This document shows, piece by piece, positions 24,401 through 44,800 of a DNA stretch of 64,000 nt. The stretch comes from Oopsacas minuta (taxonomy: Eukaryota; Animalia; Porifera). Position 1 is the stretch's first letter, and each line of letters starts with the position of its first letter. The stretch spans positions 434,001 to 498,000 of the forward strand of contig JAKMXF010000365.1 of assembly GCA_024704765.1 (NCBI GenBank). The letters are read 5' to 3'. The notes under the pieces were generated by a model. The model saw only the letters and a list, made by a program, of their open reading frames with translations. It searched no databases and had not been told where the DNA came from. The position numbers and the translations under genes were made by a program.

Positions 24401-25627
24401 GCTGTAACTTCTCTTGACGTATGAGTTCTGCTCTGAGGGAGGTTCCTCTTTCATGCTCAGCTGTTTCCAGTCTATCCCATGCCTTATTAATATCTGATAT
24501 CAACAGACCCTCGGGTGGTTTCCAACTCTTCATCATTTGTTCTCTCAGCTGGGATTGAATATTGAAAAATATTTCCTCTAACGAAACTCTATCTCCGTAC
24601 TTTGGTGGCTTCTCATCGTGACGATATCTATTGTAAATATATAAACAATAAATATATACGAACTCAAAGTTCTGAAAAAATAATAAACTTACTTATTGAA
24701 ATTTGATAGTAGCTCTCTCATGCCAGCAAGAGAGTTAGGAAAAGAGTGTTTACTGAGAGACACAATCTTATCCTCAATCCACTTGAGTAGAGCAGTTGCT
24801 ATAGTCACATACTGCTGCTTAGTTTTCTCTAATTCCATAAGGAATGTGAGAATCTTCACCAGCCTCTTGCCACCAGTCTCTCCATCCTTTAGTTTAGTAA
24901 AGTAGTGATACAATGCTACAACATATGTCATGATACTCTTGTCATCAGGTCGCATGACATCAACGTCTTCAGCATCCAGCAGTTGTTTTATACCCAAACG
25001 TCGCTCTGCTACTCTAAATGCATTATTGAGATTATCCTGATGTTTTGATGGGACCAATTTCTCAAACTCTATCAGTTCAGGTCTGTGCTTGTGTATAAGA
25101 GCATTGAATGCTAATCCATCTCTCCAGCTGGTTGTAAAGTTCTGTACATTCACATTAGCGTAACCTTTTGTTTTGATCTGACACCATAACAATAGCGCTT
25201 CTTTCGCGGATTTTCTCTCATTGGACTCAGTCTCTATCACGATGTCTTCGATCTGGAAGCGGAGGATGACTGTCCATATCAGTCCCAATGTAAGAGTAGG
25301 ATTACCGTCTACTATATCCTCTGGTCCAATACCCTCCAAACGCACTTTCTTCAACTGTAAGAACTTGAGCACTCTGGATACATTCTCTACCATATGTAAG
25401 CGTAGTTTTCCGCGATTTATCGTGAAGGTCTCTCCTGATAGTATCTGTAGCACTTTGAGGAGGAGTACTCCATCACATAAGTCTTTGTAGAGATCATTGA
25501 TGTGTAAGCCTACTTTGTCTAGATTAGAGTTTATCCATTTTGTGAATGTCTTCTTCTGAGTATTTTCTCGCTGTTTTTTTAGAACCTCAATGCGGTTCCG
25601 TTCGAAACCGTAAGTGAGGTGTGCCAT
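12449..25627 (-). CDS. SPTBN5: Beta-heavy spectrin (2 CH domains, spectrin repeats, internal SH3, PH), 6 exons, 3899 aa
   Basis: Exons 25627-24693, 24627-24388, 24133-23491, 22615-19902, 19849-19378, 19144-12449 sum to 11700 nt with all phases matching. CH motifs QKKTFTKWIN and SWRDGLAFNALIH; SH3 WWLVKR...GYVPANYV; PH domain near the C-terminus. The size and SH3 indicate the beta-H class. Confidence 0.93.
22697..23359 (+). CDS. Unknown 220-aa protein nested antisense in the spectrin intron 22616-23490
   Basis: ATG-to-TAA ORF filling most of an 875-bp intron, so it is not a shadow of spectrin coding sequence. It has a Lys-rich patch KKGSKKKTVKK and a motif-like C-terminus WEPLSYSA...APGEGQLWGKTTKMWKP. 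Confidence 0.65.
   Translation: MESHSGYNIGWRTDRYRRFLPELDSCKELKNDCSIKTSPEAQSSADKLELMLHTASINRTLVEAYMEDMAVRRDTLREGDLAIAKIEDYNRERNEDQNHIVTSVQKHRTEATKYPQPPELRESKLLLLNDISVERYGKKGSKKKTVKKESSLKTRSPSPTRIFFTESPDKPTVCVKKANKEERWEPLSYSAMGDLGFNFRIAPGEGQLWGKTTKMWKPNI
24178..24353. mobile_element. Degenerate pogo/Tigger-like MITE in the spectrin intron 24134-24387
   Basis: Flanked by TA at both ends. Left CAGCCAACTC..., right ...GGTCCCTTGAGCTTCAATAAATCGGGAGTGAACTG. The right end resembles that of the 27727 element. Confidence 0.55.
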
Positions 25628-26870: not shown

Positions 26871-29800
26871 ATGCGTTGGATAATCCTGTTCACAGCGTTG
26901 CTCGTCTGTACAACAATTTGCTGGTCAAGGCATAAGAGTGGTAAACCAACCTCACTGGGAAAGAACAAGAACTACCCTGATAGAGATGCGGTAGATGAGT
27001 GTGGAAGAATCCAAATCCAAATTAAGAGAAATACTGGCCCTTTCAAGCGTTTAATCAAATACTTCACTAATTCTCAGCAGTTTATTGCTACTCCAGATCA
27101 AAGTTATGTCACTAGCAGACTCAAATTGGTTATCGACAGATTACTTCAAGCAATAAACTCTGAAGACGCTATCGATATTATTCAAGGATGGAGTGAAGAT
27201 ATTGACCTAGACGACAGACTATCATTGCGTTATGAAGGTAAATATTTATCGCAGATAATGATATGGTAGTAATTTAATACTATACTTTTTTTAGCTCGTT
27301 CCATAAGATTCAAATATCGCTCAAATAACGTTGCAAACAGACTCAGGGATTTAGCTGGCTATGCTATAGAAGCTGGATGTGATTGGGTCAGGAATGAGGA
27401 AGATGACTACATCACTTGTTGTGTCAGACCAGACGGTATGTTATGACGTCATTTTATGACACCATACACATGAAACTCCTTATTAAATAATTATATTTTG
27501 AATTATTGATTTAGATTGCAGAGTTCCTATTGATTTGACCTTCATGCTGGACACTTCAGGGAGTGTAGGTCGCAGAAACCATGAACAAGCCCTTAAATTT
27601 ATATACGATGTCGTTGGATACTTCAACATAGGTTATAATGCTACTCAGGTAGCATTAATTCCATTTGCTACTTATGTACACTCATACTTCTTCTTTAGCA
27701 GGTAACACTTGTATATTAGATATATGCAGTCGAATCCAGTTATATCGAAAAAATCATAGCGGTACCTTGAGTTTCAATATAACAGGAGTTTACTGTATTT
27801 TGATTATTATTTAAGGTACTATGGATATTTAACTCTTCTATGTAATATTTGAGATTGGTGTCATCTTTTGAAATTTAATAACTGTTATAAACGTCCAGGT
27901 CATTGGGTGATATACACACACACAATTTTTGATTGTATTAACCTCTGAATTTTATTCTTCTAGTTTTACAGACAAGGCTAGTCTACAAGCACGAATTCTA
28001 TCCATCCCATATTCACGTGGTTGGACAAATACGTGGAAAGGACTGTACGTAGCAGAGTATTATGTTTACACTCAAACTTACGGGGTTAGACCGATATTAA
28101 GTGGTGTTCCTAGAGTTGTCATAATCCTTACAGATGGTAAATCAAATGGTAGAGACCCTCTTCCATATGCTGAGAGTTTAAAGGATGCCGATGTTACTGT
28201 GTTTTCTGTTGGAATTGGGAGGTAATCACTTCAATCTATGCATGATCTTCCTGACTACTTTATTCTATTTATTTAGTGGTATCGATGAAGAAGAGCTGAG
28301 ACAATTCGCTTCTGATCCAGTTGATGATCACGTCATTCTGATTGATTCATACCCAGACATAGAAGATTTTGTCAATAGATTGTCTGCTTACACTTGTACA
28401 GGTTTGTATAGCGTCTGTAGATTTATCATAACTCATATATATTTTAATTATTTGTCTAACAGAACCTGGCCCAACAGACCCTGGCAATATCACTGAAGTT
28501 GAAATACCTGAAGATGACTTTCGCTACTTCCAAGCAATGTGTTCATCATATAATCATAGCAATACTACAATTACTATAGAGGAGACAGATGTAAATGGAA
28601 CATGTTCCCTCTACGTTTCTACTGACCCTGATAACAAGAATCCGGGTCCTCTTACAAGCACCATTACTACCTACAGTAACACATCAAATGTTGTTGTAAA
28701 ACATATTACACTACCAAGTGGTATCAATACTACTGTAAGTGTTTTAAACTGTTAATTCATATTTTATTGGCCTTTTACATGTTTCTATCTCTCCTAGCTC
28801 ATTTATATATCATTACAAGGGACAGGGACAACAATGAACGCATGTACTGTAACGATATATGACACTCTGTTTAATCAAACTAGCTATGATTTCGCTATAC
28901 CAGAGGAAGTGTATAATGATCATGTATTAGGTACATTAACTGCAGAGTTCAGATCTGGAGATTTTGAGTGAGTTTTCGTTGCTTAATCTTAAATTAAAAT
29001 CTTGTTAATAGTTTCCGATTTCCTATTGAGAACATTATAATAATTGTTTATACCCTCTAGCTATTACTATTCCATAATACAAGAGAAAGACTACAACTTT
29101 TTCTCAATAGACTCTGAAACCGGTCGCCTCGCTGTATCCGGTACATTTGATTTTGAAGATAGAAACATGTATCAAGCCAGTATACTAGTGGAAGATCCAA
29201 GAATAGGTTGTCTAAAGGGCCGTACTACTGTAAATCTTTTGATAACAGATATCAATGATAATCGTCCAATATTCGCACAAGAACTTTATACTGAAAATAT
29301 ATCAGAAAATGTCCACATAGATTACGAGGTAATTACTGTATCAGCTATTGATAAGGATACTGGTACTAATGCTGAACTGGTATACAGCTTTGAAGATCCC
29401 AATCATAATACTGATTTCGCTATATCCTCTGAGGGCGTGGTGACTGTATCAGAATATCTAGACGGGTACTTAATGCCGTACTATGAATACACCTTCGTTG
29501 CTACTGATGGAGGACAGCCTGTTATGAGCGGAACAGCTACTTTGAGGATTAATATTAATCGAGTTAATTCACAGCCTATATTTATCGAATGTTCTACTGA
29601 TGATTGTGAATTGGAAATTCCCGAGAATTCTCTTGATGGTGATGATTTCCTGAATTTAGATTATTTTCTAACTGCTATGGATCCAGACACTGGAGGACCT
29701 GATGCTGAGTTAACATGGACTGGTGGTAGTGCTCTTTTCGAGATTGATTCTGAGACAGGTGAATTGATACTAACAGGTGATCTAGATAGAGAGACTCAAG

Positions 29801-32800
29801 CTAGCTATTCATTAGAATTCATTGTGTCAGATGGAGGAAATCCTAGTCTATCTGCAGCCGTCACTGTCACAGTGATAGTGACAGATGTCAACGATAACCG
29901 GCCTGAGTTTGAACAAGATATTTACTCAAATGTAATCGCAGAGAACCTAGGCCCTATTGATATTTTCCGAGTAGTCGCAACGGATATGGATGAAGGGTAT
30001 AATGCGGAAATAACGTATTCGCTCGGTGGTAATGCTCAATACTTTTCCATTAATGATGATGGAGTCGTGTCAACAACACAACAATTTGACTTTGAGAACC
30101 TTCCATCTAACCTTATAGACTTTAATATTATAGCAACCGATGGAAATTTTATAGAAGAAGTTCTTGGCCTTTTGACTATCACAGACGTTAACGATAACTC
30201 TCCTAGCATAACCGGTATAAGTACTGTTACTCTACCTGAAAACACTACACTCAATACTGTAGTGTTTAACTTGACTATCACTGATGCAGATTCTGAGGAA
30301 AATGGGGAGGTAACTGTTGTTATAGTTGATGGCAATCAAGCTGGATCATTCCTACTAGAGCATAATGATACGAATGCTATAATAATTCTGGAAAGAAATC
30401 TTGACTTTGAAGTTTCTCGCTCTCATATACTGAGGTTACGTGCTACTGACGGAGGAGATCCAGCTCGTATTACGTCACTAGACCTACATGTTACTGTACT
30501 AGATATTAACGACAATACTCCAATGTGTAGCCCAGAAATTACCAATACACTCCGTGAAGATGTACCAATAAATACACAAGTAGGACAAGTACAAGCTACT
30601 GACGGAGATGGACCTAACTCTCCTAACTCACAAATTTCATACAGTATCACTGCCGTTAACTCACATACTTACACAAACCTAGTAGAGCTATTCTCTATTA
30701 GCTCTGATGGCTTAGTTACAACTAATGGAGCACTAGATATAGAATCATCTCCTCAGTATAATATCACAGTAACTGCGTCTGATAACGGTGATCTTATGCT
30801 CAGCTGTAGAGTCTATATCATATTAACACTAGAAGATGTTAATGAATTTCCTCCTGTTATCAACACTACTGCTTCAACCTTAAATGTTACTGTAAGAGAA
30901 GATGCTCCAGATGGTACACTAATTGCTACTGTTATAGCAACAGATGCTGATTTCACCAGTGGAGGTATTATATATGAGCTAACAAACCCAAATTTTGGCA
31001 TCAATCCTGAAAATGGAGAGATAAGGGTAACTGGGAGCTTAGACTTTGAGACTACACCTTCCTACCAGCTGATAGTAGTAGTTACCGATGGATTCAATGA
31101 AGGAACTGCTGTTATAGCAGTGGAAGTTCTTAATATTAATGACATTACTCCTACAATCAATATAGAAACTCCTCTTCCTGTATCAGAGGGTTTGCTTGTA
31201 GATTCAAATATAACCTGTTTCGATATAATGGATGGAGATGGAGAGGCTAATGGAATATTTTCTGTGTCTTTTAGCGGAGCTGGCTCTTCTCTGCTTAATT
31301 ACAATACCAATACAAGTTGTATAACTCTAGCTGAAGAGTTGGATAGAGAAGGGGATCTAGGAGATAATCTTGTAGTCTCGTTAACAGTTAATGACAATGG
31401 AGAACCTAATCTGCACTCCACTACAGCGTTTGTGCTAGAAATAACAGATATTAATGACAATAATCCTACATTTTCAGGTCCCTTATTGTCATCTTCTGTC
31501 TCTGAGAATTCAGATATAGGGACAGCAGTCTTCTCCGCAGTAGCTACTGATATAGATGCTGGGGATAACGCTAGGATTGTATACCAACTCAACTCAACTC
31601 AATTCTCTATTAATATTAACGGTTTGATATCTGTGAATGATGTGATAGACTTTGAGACTACAGTTACGATTGTCCTGCTTGTAACTGCTAGTGATCTCGG
31701 CGGCCCCTCTCTCAGCGGTACTGTAACTGTTGTCGTAGAAGTAATTGATGCGAATGACAATGTCCCAGTTCTAACAAACCTACCATTTACAGTGAATATC
31801 CCAGAGAATGGAGATGGTGTTGAATATATATTCTCTGTGACGTCATTTGATTTAGATACAGATTTAGAATCTCAGAATCCTGAATACTTTATCATAGAAT
31901 CATCGCCTAACAACACCCCTGATTTTTATTTTGAAGGTTATCATATATTAGCTAATACTTCTGTGTTTGATAGGGAAGCTATTCCATTGTACTCCCTCAC
32001 CATCTCTGTATCAGATGGATCCTTTTCAGCTACAAGTACATTGACCATAAACATTACAGATGTTAACGATAACGCTCCCATGTTTCTAGGAGAATTATCC
32101 TTCCCTATTAAAGAATGTGAACATGATTGTTTCAATGTATTTACGATAGAGACTTTTGATACTGATGAATCTGGTACAATTAATGCAGTTCTCAGTACAG
32201 TGGATATTTTCAATACTAACTCGTTTGTTGCCGAAATTCTCGACACAAACACTATCAATATATCTTGTGTCCCAAATGCGGTAGATTTCGAGACAGCTCC
32301 TACCGAGTCATTCATATTACAAGCTACAGACGGAGGAGATCCTCCTCTATCTATTAACGTAACAATACAAGTTGAAGTATTAGATTGTAATGACAACATG
32401 CCTGTATTCTCTCAATCATATATCGAGATACCTCTCTATGAAGATGTACCAGTAAACTCTGTTATTACTGCATTCGCTGCTACAGATGTAGACACTGGTC
32501 TAGCTGGATTAGTTTCATACAGACAAGTCAACCTAGACAACCTTTTCTTTACTATTAACGCTACTACTGGTGAAGTAACCCTAATAAGATCTCTGGATTT
32601 TGAGTCTAGTAGAAACCACATTTTCTATGTGATAGCGTTTGATAGTGGATCCCCTAGTCTCAGTGCAGAAAGCTATCTACAAGTCAATGTTACTAATGTC
32701 AATGATAATCTCCCAGCCTTTGATTTTGACCCATATGAGCTGTCACTACCAGAGAACGAAGAACTGGGTTTCATATACAGTGATATTATGGCAACTGATG

Positions 32801-35800
32801 ATGATGGAGATACTATTGTATTCTTCATCCAAGGAAATACTCCTTTCACAGTCGAAGATGAACATTCTTCCAATTTAACGCTGACATCTGAACTTGACTT
32901 TGAAGATCAATACTTCCATTCCTTCACTATATTTGCTAAAAATCCTAACAGTACTGCGTCTGTATCAGCTGTAATTAACCTATATGTGTTAGATGTCAAT
33001 GACAATAGTCCTGTCATAACCAATGAAATATTTGAATTCAGCATACCAGAAGACACTGCATCCGGTACATTCGTATTCACGGCAACAGCTAAGGATAGTG
33101 ATTCAGGAGAAAATCGAATGTTCCATTTCTTCTTCCACGAATATATCTCAGAGTTTGAAATCACTCCCGATGGAGTTGTAACAACAAACGCAACATTTGA
33201 TAGAGAAGATATCTATAGTTATATGTTAAGCATTACTGTACAGGATATGGGAGAACCAACCATGAGCTCAACGCAATATTTTATGATTATAATTACAGAC
33301 GTTAATGATAACACTCCTCAATTTGATAGTAACGAGTATAGAGATTATATTTCAGAATCTGCACAACCTGGTACACAGCTACAGGTCATCATTGTATCAG
33401 ATTCCGACTCGGAGGAAAATGCTGAAGTTGACTTGACAGATGACTCTAGTGTGTTTAATGTTACTGAATCAGGTTCTGTAATTCTAGTTAGCCCTTTGGA
33501 TTTTGAATCGAGAAGTGACTATACATTTACAGTGACAGCAACTGATAGAGGTAATCCTTCCTTATCAAATACTGTTAACTATACGGTGATTGTTGAGAAC
33601 GAGAACGACAATCCTCCTGTCTTCTCATCTCCTATTTTCCAACTGAATATTCAAGAATATAATCAGTTAACTAACACCCATGAAAGTCTTGGAGTTATCT
33701 TCATAGCTGAAGCAACGGATGCTGACGATAACATGCTCTATTATTCATACGAAGTATTAAATGGTATAAATGTCTTCTCAATCAACTCTATTTCAGGTGA
33801 ACTATTCGCCTCCTATGAAGTAGATAGAGAGGCTTACGATCAGTTCGTGATAAATATAACTGCTACAGATGGATTATTCAACACATCTGCTCTCCTGTAT
33901 CTTATAGTTACAGATGTCAATGATAATTTCCCTTACTTCATATCTCCTAACATGAATAGATCAGTAAGTGAAGCTACACAACTTGAAGCTATCATAGCGA
34001 GTATAGAAGTTGTCGATAGAGACATTGGATTGAATGGATCGGTTGAATTATCAATTGAACAGACAGATCCAAATACTGAGTCTAGCGTGTTAGCAATATC
34101 ACAAGATGGTCAAATCGTACTTACAAGTGTTCTAGACTTTGAAACAACTAAAGAATATTCGTTTCGTATTACAGCTACTGACATGGGCCCTACCCCTCTT
34201 TCAAACACTACTACATTTACCCTCAGAGTATCAGATGTTAATGATAATACCCCTGTATTTACCATGGCTAATTATTCTGTGACAATAGAAGAGAACACGA
34301 TACCTAATCTTATGTGTGTATCTGCTACAGACGCAGATAGTGGTGTTAATGCCCATTTATCCTTCTTTATCCTGCAAGAACAAAGTGAATTAGAATCTGC
34401 TTTTGCCTTTTCTGGGTGTAACTTGATGGTAGTGGAGAGCTTTGATTTTGAACAGATACAAACATTCACTATTTTACTTGGTGTTCGAGATGCTGGTACT
34501 CCCTCTCTCAACTCCAGTGTGCTAGTCTACGTACAGATTACAGACGTGAATGATAACGAGCCTTTGTTCATCGGAGACTATCCCGATCCTCTCCTGGTTA
34601 GTGAGAACACTGCTATTGACACAGTTATATTATCAGTACAAGCTAGTGATTTAGACTCAGGATTGAATGGAAAGATAACATTCACCTTGTACGAAAATTT
34701 TAATGAAAAGTTCGGTATTACAGTAGATGGAAATCTTACTGTGCTAGAAATACTTGATTTCGAAACGACAGAGAGTTACTCACTGTCAATTATAGGTACG
34801 GATATGGGAGATTTCCCCTTGAGCACCTTTCTCAATTTAACTGTACAGGTAGTTAATGAGAACGATAACAACCCAATGTTTAATCAATCTTACTACGAGT
34901 TCTATATCCCAGAAAATTCCCCTATTGATACACTAATTGGCCAGACCCCTGCTACTGATGGAGATAGCGGATCGTTCGGAGACCTCATTTATTCAATTGT
35001 TAATGACCCCAATATTGCGATCTATTACACAAATACTTCTACTGAGCTCTCTACATTGATACAATTAGATCGTGAAGTTATACCCTCTTACTCTCTACAA
35101 GTACAAGTACAGGATGGAGGAGACCCTCCTCTATTCGATAGTGCTGATGTTACAATAACACTACTTGATGTAAATGACAATACACCTACGTTTGATGATG
35201 ATATTATTATAGTTACTATCCTAGAGAATGTCCCTGTTAACAGTATAGTTGTAGAGCTACATGCTACTGATAACGATCAGCCCGACACTCTCAATTCTCA
35301 AATAACATTCTCAATAAACGATACTACTTTCTATTTGGATCCTGATTATCCATCTGGGACTGTTATAATACGTACATATACTATATTAGACCGTGAGGTA
35401 CAATCTGTGTATTTTATCCAAGTAACAGCTACAGACAGTGGTTCCCCACCTCTTTCTTCTACAGCTAATATCACTGTTATTCTAGGAGATATTGATGACA
35501 ATGCTCCCATGTTTACTGATACTTTCGCCAACATAACACTGCCAGAATCCACAGCTGTTGACACACTAGTAGCTACTTTCTCCGCTTCTGATTCGGATAT
35601 ATCATCAACAATAATTTATACAATTCATCCATTTGATACATTTTATATTAACAGCAGTGGATCTGTCTTTCTAGGTACAAGTTTAGACTTTGAGACAACT
35701 CAGTTTTATAACTTAACTATTAATGCTACAGACGATAGAGCCAATTCTTCAGCTACTCTACTCGTGTTTGTTACTGACGTTAACGAATATGTACCTTATT

Positions 35801-38800
35801 TTCTACAAAATTACACAGCTATGGTATATGAGAATCTGGATCCAGGCGCATTTGTTGTTACAGTAGAAGCTAATGATAGTGATGCAAGTAGCTTGTTAGT
35901 ATACTCAATCTCAGGGGATAGAGCTGATCAATTTCAAATAGACATCTCTGGTGAAGTTACAACAGGAGAAATACTGGATAGAGAGGATCCAAGGGGTCAT
36001 ATAATCTTTCTAACGTTAGAAGTATCAGATTCTGGATCTCCCACTCTGGCAGGATTCGCTTCTCTCACTATAGAAGTTAGAGATGTAAATGACAATATTC
36101 CTGAGCTCATTAATTTTCCATCTAGCCTAACTCTACCTGAAAATACTCCTATCAACAACACCTTGGTTCATATACAGGCAATAGACGCAGATACTGGAGT
36201 TAATGCAGATATTTCATACTCTCTACTTATGGACTTTGATATATTTAACCTCACATCAACAGGGCAGTTACAACTTATAAACTCGCTTGACTTTGAAACT
36301 ACAACCTCATATACCCTCCAGGTAATAGCAACAGATGGAGGTACACCAGCACTAGATACAAATAGTTATATACAGATACCAGTAACTGATGTAAATGATA
36401 ACTCTCCTGCCTTCCAAAACGAGAAATTCCTAGCTGATGTAGTGGAACATAGTAGCATCGGGGATATTATATTCAGAGCTCTAGCTACTGATGCAGATTC
36501 TGGTATATATTCTCAGCTTACCTATAGTCTTAGTACTAATCCCTATCTAACTATCAATACGACTACTGGTGATGTTACTGTTGATGGGGTAATTGATAGA
36601 GAGGTTTTTGACTTGATTAATGTTACAGTAGCTGTGTGTGATGGTGGAATACCTGCACGATGTGTTGATGAGCAGTTAATTGTTCCAGTTATCGATATAA
36701 ATGATCAGAATCCTGAATTTATTCCCAATATGGTTACAATAGAAATATCAGAAGGACATTCTGGGTTAATCCACCAGGTAATGTATATGATTATGTAATT
36801 GATGCTTGTATTTTATAATCTGTTCTACTTCAGGGTATTGCTATTGACAATGATGATCCGGGAACTAATAACTCAGAAATAGTTTCTTATACTATTTCCC
36901 CTGCTTCTTCTGGATTTACTGTTAATGGAGTAGGACAAGTATTCCCTCCAGATCTTGATTTTGAAACAAGGGTAGGCTATCAACTTCAAATTACTGCAAT
37001 AGACGGAGGAGAACCTTCTCTTAACGGATCATACACTCTGATGGTTAGTGTGACTGACATTAATGACAACCCCCCTGTTATAACTATCGAACCAGAAGAA
37101 CTTATTGTCCCTGAGGATCAATCTCCTTCTTTATTGAACGTTAGCATTTCTGCTACTGATAGGGATTCTGGAGTTAATGGAGATGTTACATTTAAACTTA
37201 TCGAGGAAGACACTCCCTTCTCTCTAACTTCTGAGGGAAAGTTATTTCTCGACGGATCACTTGATTATGATACTGGCGTACAATCGTATACTCTAACTGT
37301 ATTAGCCATTGATGGTGGTTATCCTTCTCTTAACAGTACTGCTACGCTAGTGATTATCGTAGGAGAGGTTAATGATAACTATCCTGTATTCAATCAGTCT
37401 CATTACGATGTTAGCATTTTCGAGGAACAAACTCCACCCTATTTCGTCTTTGCAGTTAACGCAACAGACTCAGATTTTGATTCTGAAGTTTCTTACTCCC
37501 TTTCAGATTATTCTTCATTCGGAATTGTTAACAATGGTACAATTTATGGTATTGTACAGATTAATTTCGAATCAGAAACTTCGATAACATTCGCTGTTAT
37601 AGCAACTGATAACGGTATACCTCCTAGATCCACTGAAGTACCTGTAACTGTTACTATTATTGATATAAACGATAATACCCCTCAGTTCGAGATTGAAGAT
37701 GCAAAGATTAATGTTAGCGAATCAGTTTCAACTCCATATGTCCTGCTAAATCTATTAGCTTTTGATGACGACTCCGGTCTCAATGGGGAAGTATTCTTTA
37801 CCATTGATAATGAAACTTCCATCTTCTCGTTGACCCATGAAGACGGCACAGCTGACTTAATTCTATTGGAATCATTAGATTTTGAGGTATTAACATACTA
37901 TTCGCTATTAGTAACAGTACATGATAGAGGAGACCCAGAGCTTAATTCCACTATAACTCTAGGAATTTGCGTGATTAATGAGAACGATAATTCTCCAATT
38001 TTTAATCAGACTGAGTATTCAGGGTCTGTTAGAGAAGATGAGGGAATAAACCATGTGGTTGTAATTGTTAAAGCAAATGATGCTGATTCAGGAATTCTAG
38101 GAATGATAGATTACATTATTTCTGTGAATAATTTCTTCTCAATTAACCAACAAGGTCAGGTCCTGGTTACCAATAGCTTAGATGCTGATACTATTTCTTC
38201 AATTCAGTTAACAGTTACAGCTTGTGATGGAGGCTCTTCTCCTAGATGTGCTAGTGTACCTATTAACATATCTCTTAGTGATGTGAATGACAACGCTCCC
38301 GAAATACATTTTCCTCCTAACGGAGAACTATTCGAAATCCCAGAGAGTGCTACTGTTGGGACAGAAATAGTTTACATATATGTTACAGACCAAGATAGAA
38401 CAACTCCTAATAACCTGCTTACATCCAGTATACTATCTGCATCAAATAATGGATATGGTTTCTTCACAATCGATGACTTAGGGACCTTAAGGTTATCTAA
38501 TCCGGTTGACTTTGAAGCTCTTACGATTCTTACTTTTGATGTAACTATTCTAGTTAGTGATGGTGGATCTCCTTCATTGAATTCTACTGTATCAATCAAA
38601 ATAGAAATTATAGATATTAATGACAATCCTCCAGTGATTACTAACGGACCCATGACCGTGTATTTGGAAGAAAATCAAGTTTCTTATCCCTCTGTAGAAT
38701 ATACTGCAACTGATGCAGATTCAGATTTAAATGCTCGATTCCACTTCTCAATATCTGATACAAGTCTAACATCAATTAACCAAGATACGGGAGTAGTCAC

Positions 38801-41800
38801 ATTCAATGGTCCCTTTGATTTCGAGGTTACAATTCAGTATAATTTCACTATAACAGTAACAGACCAAGGTATCCCTACTCTATCATCCTCAACATTTCTT
38901 ATTATAAATATACTAGATGCTAATGATAACAGGCCTGCATTTAACATGTCTACCTACGAGGTAACAATACCAGAGAGTACTGACGTAGAAGAAAATTTTA
39001 TAACAGTATTAGCAACGGATGCAGACGGTACAGATAATAATAGCATTATTACATACTCGATCATGCCCGAATATGAGAATTATTTCCAGATTGATAATGA
39101 AGGTGGCATAGCGCTTGTTCACAACCTAGATTTTGAAACGCTTATGTCACATACAATTGATTTCCACGTGCTGGCTACTGATAACGGAGACCCTTTACTC
39201 AGCTCTTCTAGTATAGTTATAATTACTGTTACTGATTCTAATGATAACTACCCTCAGATAGTACAACCTGTTAATCCTAGCATTCTAGAAGGAACATCTG
39301 TTAATACCGTACTTACTACAATTCAAGCAACAGATGCTGATTCAGGCATTAATGCAGTTCTTAGTTTCTTCATAACAAATACAGTGCCATTCTCTATTGA
39401 TCAAAACAATGGTAGTATTATAGTTACTGATACGCTAGATAGAGAAATGCAAGACTTTTATTCTATAACAATCCGTGTACAAGATAACGGTACAACATCT
39501 CTATCCAGCGAGGTGATAATTAACGTAACAGTTCTAGACAGAAACGATAATGTCCCAGTATTCATAGACGCGCCTTACGAATTTTTTGTACAAGAGAATG
39601 CCAGCAATTCTACATTAGTAGAGATTATTGATGTTACCGATGATGATATTAATGAGAATGCTTATATAACATGTCAACTGTCAGATAATGACTCTCCGTT
39701 CTATCTGTCAAGTGATTACTTAATAGCTAGAGAGAGGTTATTAACTTATGGAGAGTTGGATAGAGAGATTCAGTCAGTTTATTCACTAACAATTACTTGT
39801 CAAGATATATCATCATCTCCTCTTATATCAACAGCAGATATAATAATCAGAATTACAGACATAAACGATAACATCCCTCAGTTCCCTGATTCGGAGTACA
39901 TATTTCAGATTCGTGAAGATGTTAACCCCGAAACGGTGATTGGTACTATCCAAGCCACTGATCTAGATGAGCCGAATACTCCCAACTCTCAGTTAGTGTT
40001 CTATATAACTGAAGGAAATGAAGATAACTACTTCTCAATAACTACAGACGGTGTACTACTGACTAACAACACAGGGAGGATACCAGTAACTGATTTTACA
40101 CTGACAATAACAGCTACAGACCTGGGATCTCCTCCTCTCAGTAACTCTATACTAGTGTATATCACTATAATCGATGTTAATGATGAAGCTCCTACCTTCA
40201 ATACTACAGACGTAGGAGTTATTCGTATCAGTGAGTATACACCTGTAGGACAAAATATAGTTAACTTCACAGCTATTGATTTAGAAGGTTCTGAGATTAC
40301 ATACAGTCTTATAACAGAGATGGGAAGAGAAGGTGACTTCATAGTGGACTCTATAACAGGAGGAATAATCGTTAGTCAGCCTCTTGACTTTGAACGAGAT
40401 ACTCAATATACTCTTAAACTTATAGCTGTTGATTCTCCTGACGAAGGAGAAGGTGATGCGAGAACTGGAATGGTGAGTATACCCGTGTTCATTATTGATG
40501 AGAACGATAACAGTCCTATATTTAATCCAGATACTTATGAAGCGAATATCACTGAGAATGATGTTGGTCCGTTTGTATTAAGAACAGTATCTGCTACTGA
40601 CTTAGATTCTGAAGGAAATGGAATGGTCACGTACTCACTAGTTCCTCCAGAAGCTCTATCCGGTCTAATATCTATCAACTCTACCACAGGAATAGTATCA
40701 TTAGTGGTTGGAGTATCATTTGATTTTGAAGGCAGTCTCAGTAATGAATTTGTTATACCAGTAAGAGCAGCTGATGGAGGCAATCCATCAAATACAGATT
40801 CAGGTGTGACGTCATTGACAATATACATAATAGATGTAAACGACAACACCCCACAGATCGATCCTTTCTACTCTGCATTAATACTAGAAAACGTTACAGC
40901 TGATACATATGTCACCGTAATACAGGCCACGGATCTAGACACTGATCTTAATGGTGAGATTGTCTATTCAATAGATCCTAGTGTATACGTCCCTTTCCGC
41001 ATTGACAGTGTTACGGGCGAAATTGTATCGACAGAAGTATTAGACCGTGAGGATATTTCCTCATATAGTTTTGTAGTTACAGCCTCTGATAGAGGAATTC
41101 CGGTTAGAAGCAATAGTACAATTGTTAACGTTACTGTAGAGGATATTAACGATAACTGTCCTACTATTGTGAGTGAGGAAAATATACTATCCATATTTGA
41201 GGAAAGTTCTGGAGAAGTTTTGGATAGTATTATACAAGTAGTAGATAGAGACATAGGCTTAAACGGTGAATACAATTACACTCTTCCTGATGCATTCCAT
41301 CGTACTCTATTCAGCATTAATTCAGAAACAGGACAGTTATTTTTGTTACAACAACTTGATAGAGAAACTACAGACCAATACAATCTCACTATACACATCA
41401 CTGATAGAGGAGATATACCTTGTACTGCTACTACATTCATTATCATAGATGTACAGGATACAAATGACAATAGAGCTAGCTTCATTGGAGAGCCCTACAT
41501 CATGAGTATTAGTGAAGGAGTGCCAGTAGACACCCCATTGATCTGTGTGAATGCAAGTGATCCTGATTTGGGAGAAAACGGAGAATTCACGTTTCAGTTA
41601 GTAGGTGATATACCATTTACCATAGATCCCATTACCGGCTGTATAGTTACATCTGGGGAAATTGACCGTGAAACAAACCCAGAGTTCTTTCTCGAAGTGA
41701 GAGCAGTAGCAAACGATAACCAATTCAGTACTTCATCCGTGGAAGTTATTGTTATTGATGGGAATGACAATACTCCAACATTTACAGAGGATCCTTACAT

Positions 41801-44800
41801 TTTCAATGTTGCAGATCCCACAATTGTATCTCCCGTGAGTTATTACTTAACTTAATTACTAGCAATTTGCTTTGACAAACATTTTGTTTTCTTACAAAGT
41901 GAATATCAGTCAATTTGTTTATAATAGTTACTTATGTAGATTGGTACACTGATTGTAATTGATGAAGATGAGGGAGTTAATGGAGAACTCTTCTATGATT
42001 ACAATCTATTACAATCCAATAACACACAACTGATGTATATGTTCAATGTAACAGATAATGGTAATCCAATTCTAAGCTCTACTACTGATGTAATAGTAAG
42101 TTGACTATACTAACTAATTTTCGAATTATTCTAATACGTACTTTCTTCTCTAGATTAAATTTTCCTATTGTGAGTACTTGGCGATCAGTTTAGGAGGCAC
42201 TAACAATGAAATCGATATCTTCATAGACACACTATGTAGTGCTACAGTAGAGCTGATTTCCACATTCACTGTACTAAACTCGTCAATAACTCTTAACTGT
42301 ATCGTAGTTGGTAATCTACCATTCTTTGTACAATGGTCCAAAGATGGAACCACCATACAAGAACCTACATCAATAACTATGCTGGTTATAGAGTCATTGA
42401 GTATAGTTGATGAAGGCCAGTACACTTGTCAAGCTATACTTGCCGATCTGTCTCTATCTATACAATCAGAGCCTTATTCTCTTGTCGTACAAAGTAAGTA
42501 AAACCCAGCAATCATTGACATAATTTACTGCTTATATACTTCTCTAGTTCCTCCTGAAATTACTATTCCACCAAAAGATCTCGCTATCAACAATGGAGAT
42601 ACACTAATCCTATCTTGTTACTCAATCGGAGTACCAGACCCTGATCACTACTGGCGTCTCTCTACCTTAGCGGAACCATTAATTATTGACATAGGTTCAC
42701 AAGACGCTCCAGAATTTAACGTTACCAAAAATCAAATAAGTCTGCCTGCTATTACCAATGAGTATGAAGGTTATTACTCCTGTAATGCTAGTAATGCAGT
42801 AGGGTATGATGAGAAATCAGGACTAATAATTATACACTGTAAGTATACTAATGCTGTATTTAGGCTACTACATGTTATACGTATGTATACTCTTCTATAG
42901 CTGTCACTGATGTTGTTACAATCGGATTTAACAACAACTTCTCTAATCCTGATCCGAATAATGGTGGCTGTAATAATCTTGAAACAAGTATACTTGAGGT
43001 GTGTTTTTATTTAATTAATATAATAATCTTAACAATATTTATACTCATTATTTATGTAGAATATATTAAGTGGAATAACTGGTACTTCAACAACAATAGC
43101 CTCTAGCAGTGGTGACAGTAATCTATGTGATACAAGTGGTGGTACAACAATCACGACAACTACTACAACAACAATGTGTAATCCTAATCCCTGTAACGGA
43201 TATCAGTGTACTTTAGATGATTTTGTTGGCTTCATTTGTGAATGTCCCGCTACTCTACTAGGGGTAACTTGTAATATGGACAATGATGAGTGTTCAGGAT
43301 TAGGTAAATACTCCAAGTCTGATATCAAATTTTAAGATATTCTTTATTCAATTCTCTTCTAGGTATCTGTCAGAATGAAGGTGTATGCATGAACTCATAT
43401 AATGGGTTCAGTTGTGTATGCCAGAGTGGATTTACTGGAGAAACTTGTGAGATACCCATCTCTTGTGAGGTGAATTCTTGTCCAGATAGTGAGATGTGTG
43501 TAGATACTGTGGATGGTTTTGACTGCCTTATCACACAAAATGTAACTGTCAATACTACAAATGAACAATCAGCTAATAATGTTGCTGCAACGGTCAATGA
43601 TGAGCAGGTAAAAAATCGTATTTTCCCTTATGTAAATCCTCCTCTATTCTTGTAACAGCCTTCTATTGGAAAATAATATTATAATAATACAATTAGACTG
43701 AGAATATCGAGATCAACCGTCGTAGACGCCAGACTGTCGCTTTCCCTCAACTTGCATACAGGAATTGTGTGGTTATAGTTTCTAGAGAAACAGGATCTAC
43801 AGTAGTAACACTAATTATTGGATGTCTTCAAAAATTTACATTAACTGAGGCAGACTTATCAGAAGTTTGTCAGTATCTCTATGACTCATATGCTAACTTC
43901 CAATCATGCACTACCCCAATGGGAAATGTGCTGCTTGGACCTAAAACACCACCTTCGTGAGTATCAATTCTAAATTATATTAATAACTCATTTATTTCAA
44001 TCTTCCTACAGATTTGGTGTTACTATATCCGTAATTCTGACTAACCCATCATCAGGAGAGGTTATCCCTGGTACTACAGCTGTAGAATTAATAGTTAATG
44101 GTATCAAAGATGCTAGTAATGATGACAATTTGTCTAACCAGCTGGTAGAACTAGGTTTCCCAGAACCAGACCTCACTCAGATAACAGCAACTTCTCGTAA
44201 GTTAACACATAAATATTAAACTTATTGTAACTTAACAATTTCTATACATGTTTTCTGTAGTTCCTCCTATTCCAATCGAATACACTGGAGTAGTCATAGG
44301 CATTTTGAGTATACTATTCATACTGCTGGTGATAATAATCACATGTATCTGCTTGGTTGTGTGTCTAAAACGGAGGTCTAAAAATGACAAAGTTACTAGT
44401 TACGAGCATTCAGGTGTCACAGACCATATTGAGCCTAAACCTAAGCCTACAGATCTTGAGCTAGGTCCCTCTACAGAGCTACGAGATATCAGCACAGAGC
44501 CTGAGAATGAGTATGGAATTATGGAGCAAGCTGTAGCTATTACTACATTCAATAGTGAGTTTAAAATCTTTATAATAGTTTGCTATTTCTTACTACTTAA
44601 TTATTCCAGATGCAATTGCTGAAGAACCTGAGGTAGAAGTTCAAGCAAAGCCTACTTTGGCATCAAAGTTCTCCTTCCAGAAAAAGACCACACCCTCAGA
44701 AGAAAAGGTATCTCTCGTACCTACAGAACTAACAGAGACTACAGAGGCTATAAATGTGGTAGCAGCGAATATTCCCAGCAAGAAACCTGAAGTAGGAAAG

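Follow-up and report, generated by a model that had tools for sequence, protein, structure and literature searches.

The hedgling architecture, with its Hedgehog-VWA cassette, has been described previously (PMC4054682; the architecture also in PMC2362128), and hedgling Hedge domains without a complete zinc/peptidase motif and without the calcium residues are known (Roelink 2018, Jägers & Roelink 2021; PMC6027127, PMC8052667), the sponge set of those two studies being Amphimedon only. Hedglings are central to a dispute over whether the Hedgehog signal domain derives from a hedgling-like adhesion protein or from a later-acquired bacterial peptidase gene. The Amphimedon queenslandica hedgling (ABX90059) runs from a signal peptide through Hedge and VWA domains to cadherin repeats and has no Hog part, and the cnidarian hedglings (Nematostella ABX84114 / Nv 200640, corals, Hydra) share this architecture. 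Here we analysed a stretch of 64,000 nucleotides from Oopsacas minuta (contig JAKMXF010000365.1, positions 434,001 to 498,000; hereafter the window), which carries, from 26871 onwards, a single very large hedgling gene of the same order: signal peptide, Hedge, VWA, many cadherin repeats, Ig and EGF. We put at roughly 80% the probability that its Hedge domain is a metal-independent, non-catalytic module, kept for binding or as a structural support at the outermost end of the giant cadherin and adjoining a VWA domain whose metal-ion-dependent adhesion site (MIDAS) is intact.

Residue correspondences were taken from profile alignments to the solved Shh N-domain (ShhN) and follow human SHH numbering (Table 1). 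A first-pass annotation, made from the letters alone, had read arginine, arginine and threonine at the three zinc positions; the codons are CGT, AGA and ACT, and the profile alignments agree. The zinc triad of an active M15A peptidase is thus replaced by R120, R127 and T163. Moreover, both histidines that flank the catalytic water are gone (H134 to L113, H180 to Y161), so that the catalytic glutamate, which had rightly been reported as kept, stands without its histidine pair. Of the residues at the six pocket positions (H134, H140, D147, E176, H180 and H182), E157 alone would be capable of binding a metal, and the single histidine of the mature domain (H21) adjoins the signal-peptide cut. The alignment also supports the suggestion that the domain does not act as a peptidase, with triad and peptidase machinery both missing. 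The observation behind the first-pass annotation was therefore confirmed, and its interpretation in part, namely for the lost zinc triad and peptidase machinery.

The calcium positions tell a similar story. The mouse ligands are E90, E91, D96, E127, D130 and D132 (PMC8052667); the numbers E90 and E91 that had been given for the human protein are the mouse ones, the human residues being E89 and E90. SHH E126-G-W-D129-E130-D131 aligns with Q105-G-W-S108-E109-D110. Four of the six ligands are replaced, including E126 by Gln and D129 by Ser, as had been claimed, and the two acidic positions left (D76 and D110) fall short of a six-ligand site. A DEE loop had further been described as missing. This tripeptide is not deleted but replaced by T74-P75-D76, and it is the four-residue loop following it in SHH, N91-A94, that is absent from the window domain. 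Most probably neither zinc nor calcium is bound the way Hedgehog binds them; we infer that the bound metal is absent and that the arginines fill its former pocket. Having no zinc triad, no flanking histidines and no full calcium site, the domain is taken to be a non-catalytic module, and because it is expressed, spliced and under purifying selection (below) we read it as a probable binding or structural one.

Single-sequence searches recognise the domain poorly. Pfam HH_signal (PF01085) scans were made on exons 1 and 2 separately. Exon 1 alone gave no Pfam match at E values up to 1 and no Hedgehog match in a phmmer search of the PDB. Exon 2 scored 15.4 bits against HH_signal, under the gathering cut-off of 22.1, and its 24 matches in the PDB were all Hedgehog N-domains, at marginal E values of 0.05-0.36. 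A profile of 17 hedgling exon-1 pieces, however, matches ShhN (1vhh) at 8e-13, and a profile of seven exon-2 pieces matches solved ShhN chains at 8e-9; Drosophila Hedgehog (2ibg) is likewise a PDB match of both. HH_signal recognises 12 of the 17 exon-1 pieces singly; the five that it misses are those of the window, of its three closest relatives and one more. The core of the Hedgehog/M15A fold is kept (W107, L119-x-Y-E122, R124, the A-G-x-D-W-V motif and V166). On this profile evidence the Hedge domain is genuinely homologous to the Hedgehog N-domain, though very divergent from it.

The remainder of the gene has the hedgling architecture. The signal peptide at the N-terminus leads directly into the Hedge domain, and VWA follows directly through the spliced junction 27435/27515, as in a hedgling, where a Hedgehog ligand would continue into Hog. 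No Hint/Hog match was found in the gene pieces scanned by Pfam, a scan that did not span the whole gene. All MIDAS residues of the VWA domain are kept: DTSGS (DxSxS) at 27535-27560 and, within 27964-28221, the T of GWTNT and the D of LTDG. In the Hedge-VWA cassette the site of metal-dependent adhesion thus appears to lie, intact, in the VWA domain. A long cadherin run with Ig and EGF modules completes the hedgling order; exons 3′ of 43655 gave no Pfam match.

Table 1. Coordinates of the hedgling gene features and of the SHH-equivalent positions in the window (residue changes are given from human SHH to the window protein).
Feature	Positions	Strand	Remarks
Exon 1	26871..27237	+	from the ATG
Signal peptide and start codon	26871..26927	+	hydrophobic, residues 1-19; cleavage site placed by eye
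Hedge domain, exon-1 part	26928..27237	+	residues 20-122 and first base of codon 123; exon end seen in spliced contig
Calcium positions E89 to P75, E90 to D76, D95 to Q77	27093..27101	+	profile alignment
Calcium positions E126 to Q105, D129 to S108, D131 to D110	within 27183..27200	+	Q105-G-W-S108-E109-D110
H134 (mouse H135, transition-state histidine) to L113	27207..27209	+	
H140 (zinc) to R120	27228..27230	+	codon CGT
Intron 1	27238..27294	+	57 nt, GT..AG, phase 1; skipped in run X4 contigs
Hedge domain, exon-2 part	27295..27435	+	residues 123-169
D147 (zinc) to R127	27306..27308	+	codon AGA
E176 (catalytic) to E157	27396..27398	+	kept
H180-I181-H182 to Y161-I162-T163	27408..27416	+	profile and PDB alignments
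H182 (zinc) to T163	27414..27416	+	codon ACT
Intron 2	27436..27514	+	79 nt, GT..AG, phase 1, at Hedge domain end; skipped in run X4 contigs
First two VWA exons (exon 3 begins at 27515)	27515-27701 and 27964-28221	+	intron between; Pfam VWA 6e-11 and 5e-15; junctions in run X4
Cadherin-repeat body, two giant exons	29061..41855	+	Pfam Cadherin 2e-75 and 3e-54, from samples of the two exons
Ig-like open reading frame, then EGF-like open reading frame	42178-42501, 43389-43655	+	Ig_3 4.5e-09; EGF-like 1e-4

The gene is transcribed and correctly spliced. Public reads were available as four runs from one sample, of which three yield unspliced genomic contigs. The contigs of the fourth, X4, lack both Hedge introns and five further downstream introns (seven joints, all GT..AG), and X4 was taken as cDNA because spliced contigs can only arise from cDNA. 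Its first transcript contig starts at 26825. The Hedge junctions that had been assumed are thereby borne out to the base, giving ...SLRYE-A-RSIRF... at the first junction and ...YITCCVRPD-D-CRVPIDLTFMLDTSGS... at the second; reading through intron 1 meets a stop. A 26-nt junction-spanning pattern had no match in metagenome contigs. The three critical codons are identical to the window in 4/4 runs. Only two variants against the window occur in the four runs, both in X2 and X3: AG>CA at 26928-9 (R20Q, adjoining the presumed signal-peptide cut) and T>A at 27083 (F71L). Both appear to be allelic differences within the material sequenced.

Related loci were sought in a protein database with exon 1, which gave 16 products: P0010 (1943 aa), matching weakly and locally, and fifteen short gene calls that end just past a conserved intron. 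A word search added one further short call. All 16 short calls break off just past the ...L-H-Y-E-G junction, and therefore the position of intron 1 is common to these loci. We retrieved the DNA around the exon-1 calls, located exon 2 by tblastn and checked the splice sites of each locus used; exon 2 was not located in L005, L006, L008, L010 and L012, owing to short contigs or long introns. The window groups with four loci (L001, L002, L003 and L004), which come from three or four related organisms and show 58-70% identity; this clade has 100/100 support and a stem of ~2.2 changes per site. R120 and R127 are invariant in all five members, so that four independent assemblies besides the window carry arginine at both positions. 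At the position of R120 the 13 other hedgling exon-1 products have His.

Moreover, the domain has been conserved within this clade. The ratio of nonsynonymous to synonymous change (dN/dS) is 0.19-0.22 for L001 against L003 and L004; between the window and its clade relatives dN is 0.20-0.30 and dS is saturated. Of 150 mature positions, 80 (53%) are invariant, and each of the five loci retains an intact frame, an intact signal peptide and both splice sites. Judged by these rates the Hedge domain is under purifying selection. A Hedge domain free of zinc ligands and so conserved would show that the fold can persist without metal or catalysis. The finding accords with, without proving, the published opinion that hedglings at no time acted as peptidases.

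Comparison with sponge, cnidarian and choanoflagellate hedglings, which had been proposed as a check, separates an old change from one particular to the window clade. The published anthozoan hedglings read H, R and H at positions 140, 147 and 182; Salpingoeca has H at 140 and R at 147; the demosponge-type loci L007, L009 and L011 and the published Amphimedon sequence have H at 140, R at 147 (Q in L009) and R at 182; and the window clade has R, R and then T, V or I (T, V, I, I and T across its five members). Arg at D147, which is seen in the published Amphimedon, Nematostella, coral and Salpingoeca sequences, is on this sampling an old hedgling character common to choanoflagellate, demosponge and cnidarian hedglings, whereas Arg at H140 is special to the window clade among these. 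Besides D147 to Arg, the Amphimedon and cnidarian hedglings share with the window H180 to Tyr, the absent N91-A94 loop and reduced calcium ligands, but they keep H140 (SLHYE), and at position 182 anthozoans keep the histidine where Amphimedon has Arg. The window clade differs from them further in its long branch, in the failure of HH_signal to recognise exon 1 and in having R155 (27390-27392, at SHH Y174), C151 (27378-27380, SHH F170) and C164 (27417-27419, SHH C183), found in this clade only; these three residues are invariant in the clade and missing from demosponge-type hedglings.

In our reading Arg at D147 came first and the window clade then lost the last histidine on its long stem; the demosponge-type hedglings instead have Arg at position 182. 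H140 to R is a one-base change (CAC to CGY), and the clade support together with the length of the stem supports a single origin. Hedglings of both sponge groups have arginine at two of the three former ligand positions, though not at the same two.

Outside the hedglings, the Drosophila Hedgehog N-domain has lost zinc ligands (D147 to T and H182 to Y in the published sequence) yet is functional. H140 and the whole calcium site are still there, and the protein is a morphogen that is processed and linked to Hog; the window domain, at the tip of a cadherin, has lost all three zinc ligands and four calcium ligands. The Hedglets of molluscs, echinoderms and amphioxus have Hedge-like domains predicted to be unable to catalyse (Jägers & Roelink 2021). 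They carry a basic Lys at D147, comparable to the Arg of the window, but their domain lies ~270-310 residues into the protein and they belong to another lineage; the likeness is convergent. The oyster (Crassostrea) Hedglet reads ..SLRSEGRMIK.. (PMC8052667 supplement), with Arg at H140 and Lys at D147, which makes it a separate, independent instance of zinc ligands giving way to basic residues. We infer that in sponge hedglings and in the oyster Hedglet a basic side chain takes the place of the cation. The BacHh M15A DD-peptidases and SHH/IHH/DHH belong to the same fold family and share the L-x-Y-E-G/A-R and A-G-x-D-W-V motifs with the window. They have the complete H...D...H triad, catalytic Glu, flanking His and six calcium ligands; in the window none of these sets is complete.

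What is new here is a divergent sponge clade that also lost the last histidine, a more extreme case of the described hedgling state. Our literature search found no paper naming hedgling together with hexactinellids. The overall picture is unchanged, because incomplete hedgling metal sites were already in the literature. The window domain also offers a natural zinc-free Hedge for studies of stability and binding.

Several points weigh against a metal-independent, non-catalytic module as we propose it. The alignment of E89-D95 hinges on a four-residue gap. The window keeps E157, D76 and D110 and its mature domain holds 16 Asp, so that a weak or differently built calcium site is conceivable. Finally, X4, on which the splicing rests, belongs to the sample and study that also gave the DNA runs, and nothing in its record identifies it as RNA.

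The alternative that survives best is a gain of function, in which the former zinc cleft is now a putative anion pocket lined by Arg and Tyr, receiving a sulfated glycan, phosphate or the acidic loop of a partner; that the arginines might bind anionic ligands had already been proposed in the first-pass annotation. Within the clade R120, R127, R155 and Y161 never vary, and Arg at position 127 is retained even where the codon belongs to another family (AGA in the window, CGG in L007), which fits a functional role for the arginines. Two arginines are moreover kept around one point in both sponge groups (147 and 182 in the demosponge type, 140 and 147 in the window clade), and the oyster Hedglet reached R and K at H140 and D147 independently. 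Yet L009 has Gln at position 147, and the arginines may do no more than form salt bridges with E122, E157 or D112, stabilising a fold for which SHH relies on zinc. We regard an anion pocket as possible but doubtful. Its most specific form, in which the cleft was rebuilt into a conserved R120/R127/R155/Y161 pocket that binds an anionic ligand metal-free, the second Arg having moved from 182 to 140, we hold to be somewhat more doubtful again. If this were true, hedgling Hedge domains would be ancestral metal-independent receptors or adhesion tips and not failed peptidases.

That metal is still bound, through a site rebuilt from residues such as E157, D112, D110 and C165, strikes us as improbable. 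The domain is Asp-rich, E157, D110 and D112 are present, and C165 lies on the strand of T163, two residues on. However, E157 is conserved as Glu only in the window and L002, being Gln in L001, L003 and L004, where C165 is Ser; the sole mature histidine, H21, is not conserved among the relatives; and the invariant R120, R127 and R155, at or beside the former ligands (for R155 a probable placement, read from strand register), would repel a cation. Candidate substitute ligands thus vary while the arginines are kept, which speaks more strongly than anything else in these data against a concealed metal site.

Still harder to sustain is the idea that the domain is a functionless, decaying remnant that the cadherin gene takes with it. 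In favour of this, no hedgling Hedge domain was found to be more divergent, HH_signal misses the clade exon-1 pieces and the stem branch is very long. Against decay stand the dN/dS of ~0.2, the 53% of mature positions that are invariant despite saturated synonymous sites, the intact frame, splice sites and signal peptides of five loci, and transcription and splicing of the gene. Errors of assembly or gene model, a possibility raised by the first-pass annotation, can be set aside, since four runs agree at the critical codons, spliced contigs show the junctions and the assemblies of four relatives carry R and R.

Returning to the non-catalytic module, its stability calls for comment. Zinc-site mutants of Shh are unstable (PMC8052667), and therefore a zinc-less Hedge fold would probably need compensation. 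Candidates are the salt bridges from R120, R127 and R155 to E122, E157 or D112 mentioned above, and possibly the clade-specific pair C151-C164, which may form a disulfide stabilising the zinc-less fold. A second cysteine pair may be shared more widely. All 17 hedgling exon-1 pieces have C44 (27000-27002) at a position where SHH has Ser, and a further Cys (C171, ~27517-27519) stands two residues into exon 3, after the ..PD end of the Hedge domain, as it does in Amphimedon. C44 and C171 may form a pan-hedgling disulfide linking the Hedge domain to the VWA linker.

The exon structure of the Hedge domain also bears on the literature. The hedgling Hedge domain has been stated to be encoded in 'a single large exon' (PMC8052667), whereas that of Nematostella was reported in two exons (Bürglin 2008; PMC2362128). 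Both Hedge introns (phase 1, after ..YE|G and ..PD|) lie at the same positions in the window, L001-L004, L007 and L009. The hedgling Hedge domain is therefore encoded in two exons, contrary to the former statement and in keeping with the latter report. The donor of intron 1 is GC in L003 and L004.

Upstream of the hedgling gene and head to head with it lies a calponin-homology/spectrin-repeat gene (24689-25627, minus strand). The same gene is found upstream in three relatives (L001 930-1880, L003 705-1655 and L004 841-1791), and synteny is therefore conserved. Lastly, a 31-nt stretch within intron 3 (27773-27803) recurs in each of the four runs on other, unrelated contigs, where both of its ends are loose, and is probably a short dispersed repeat.

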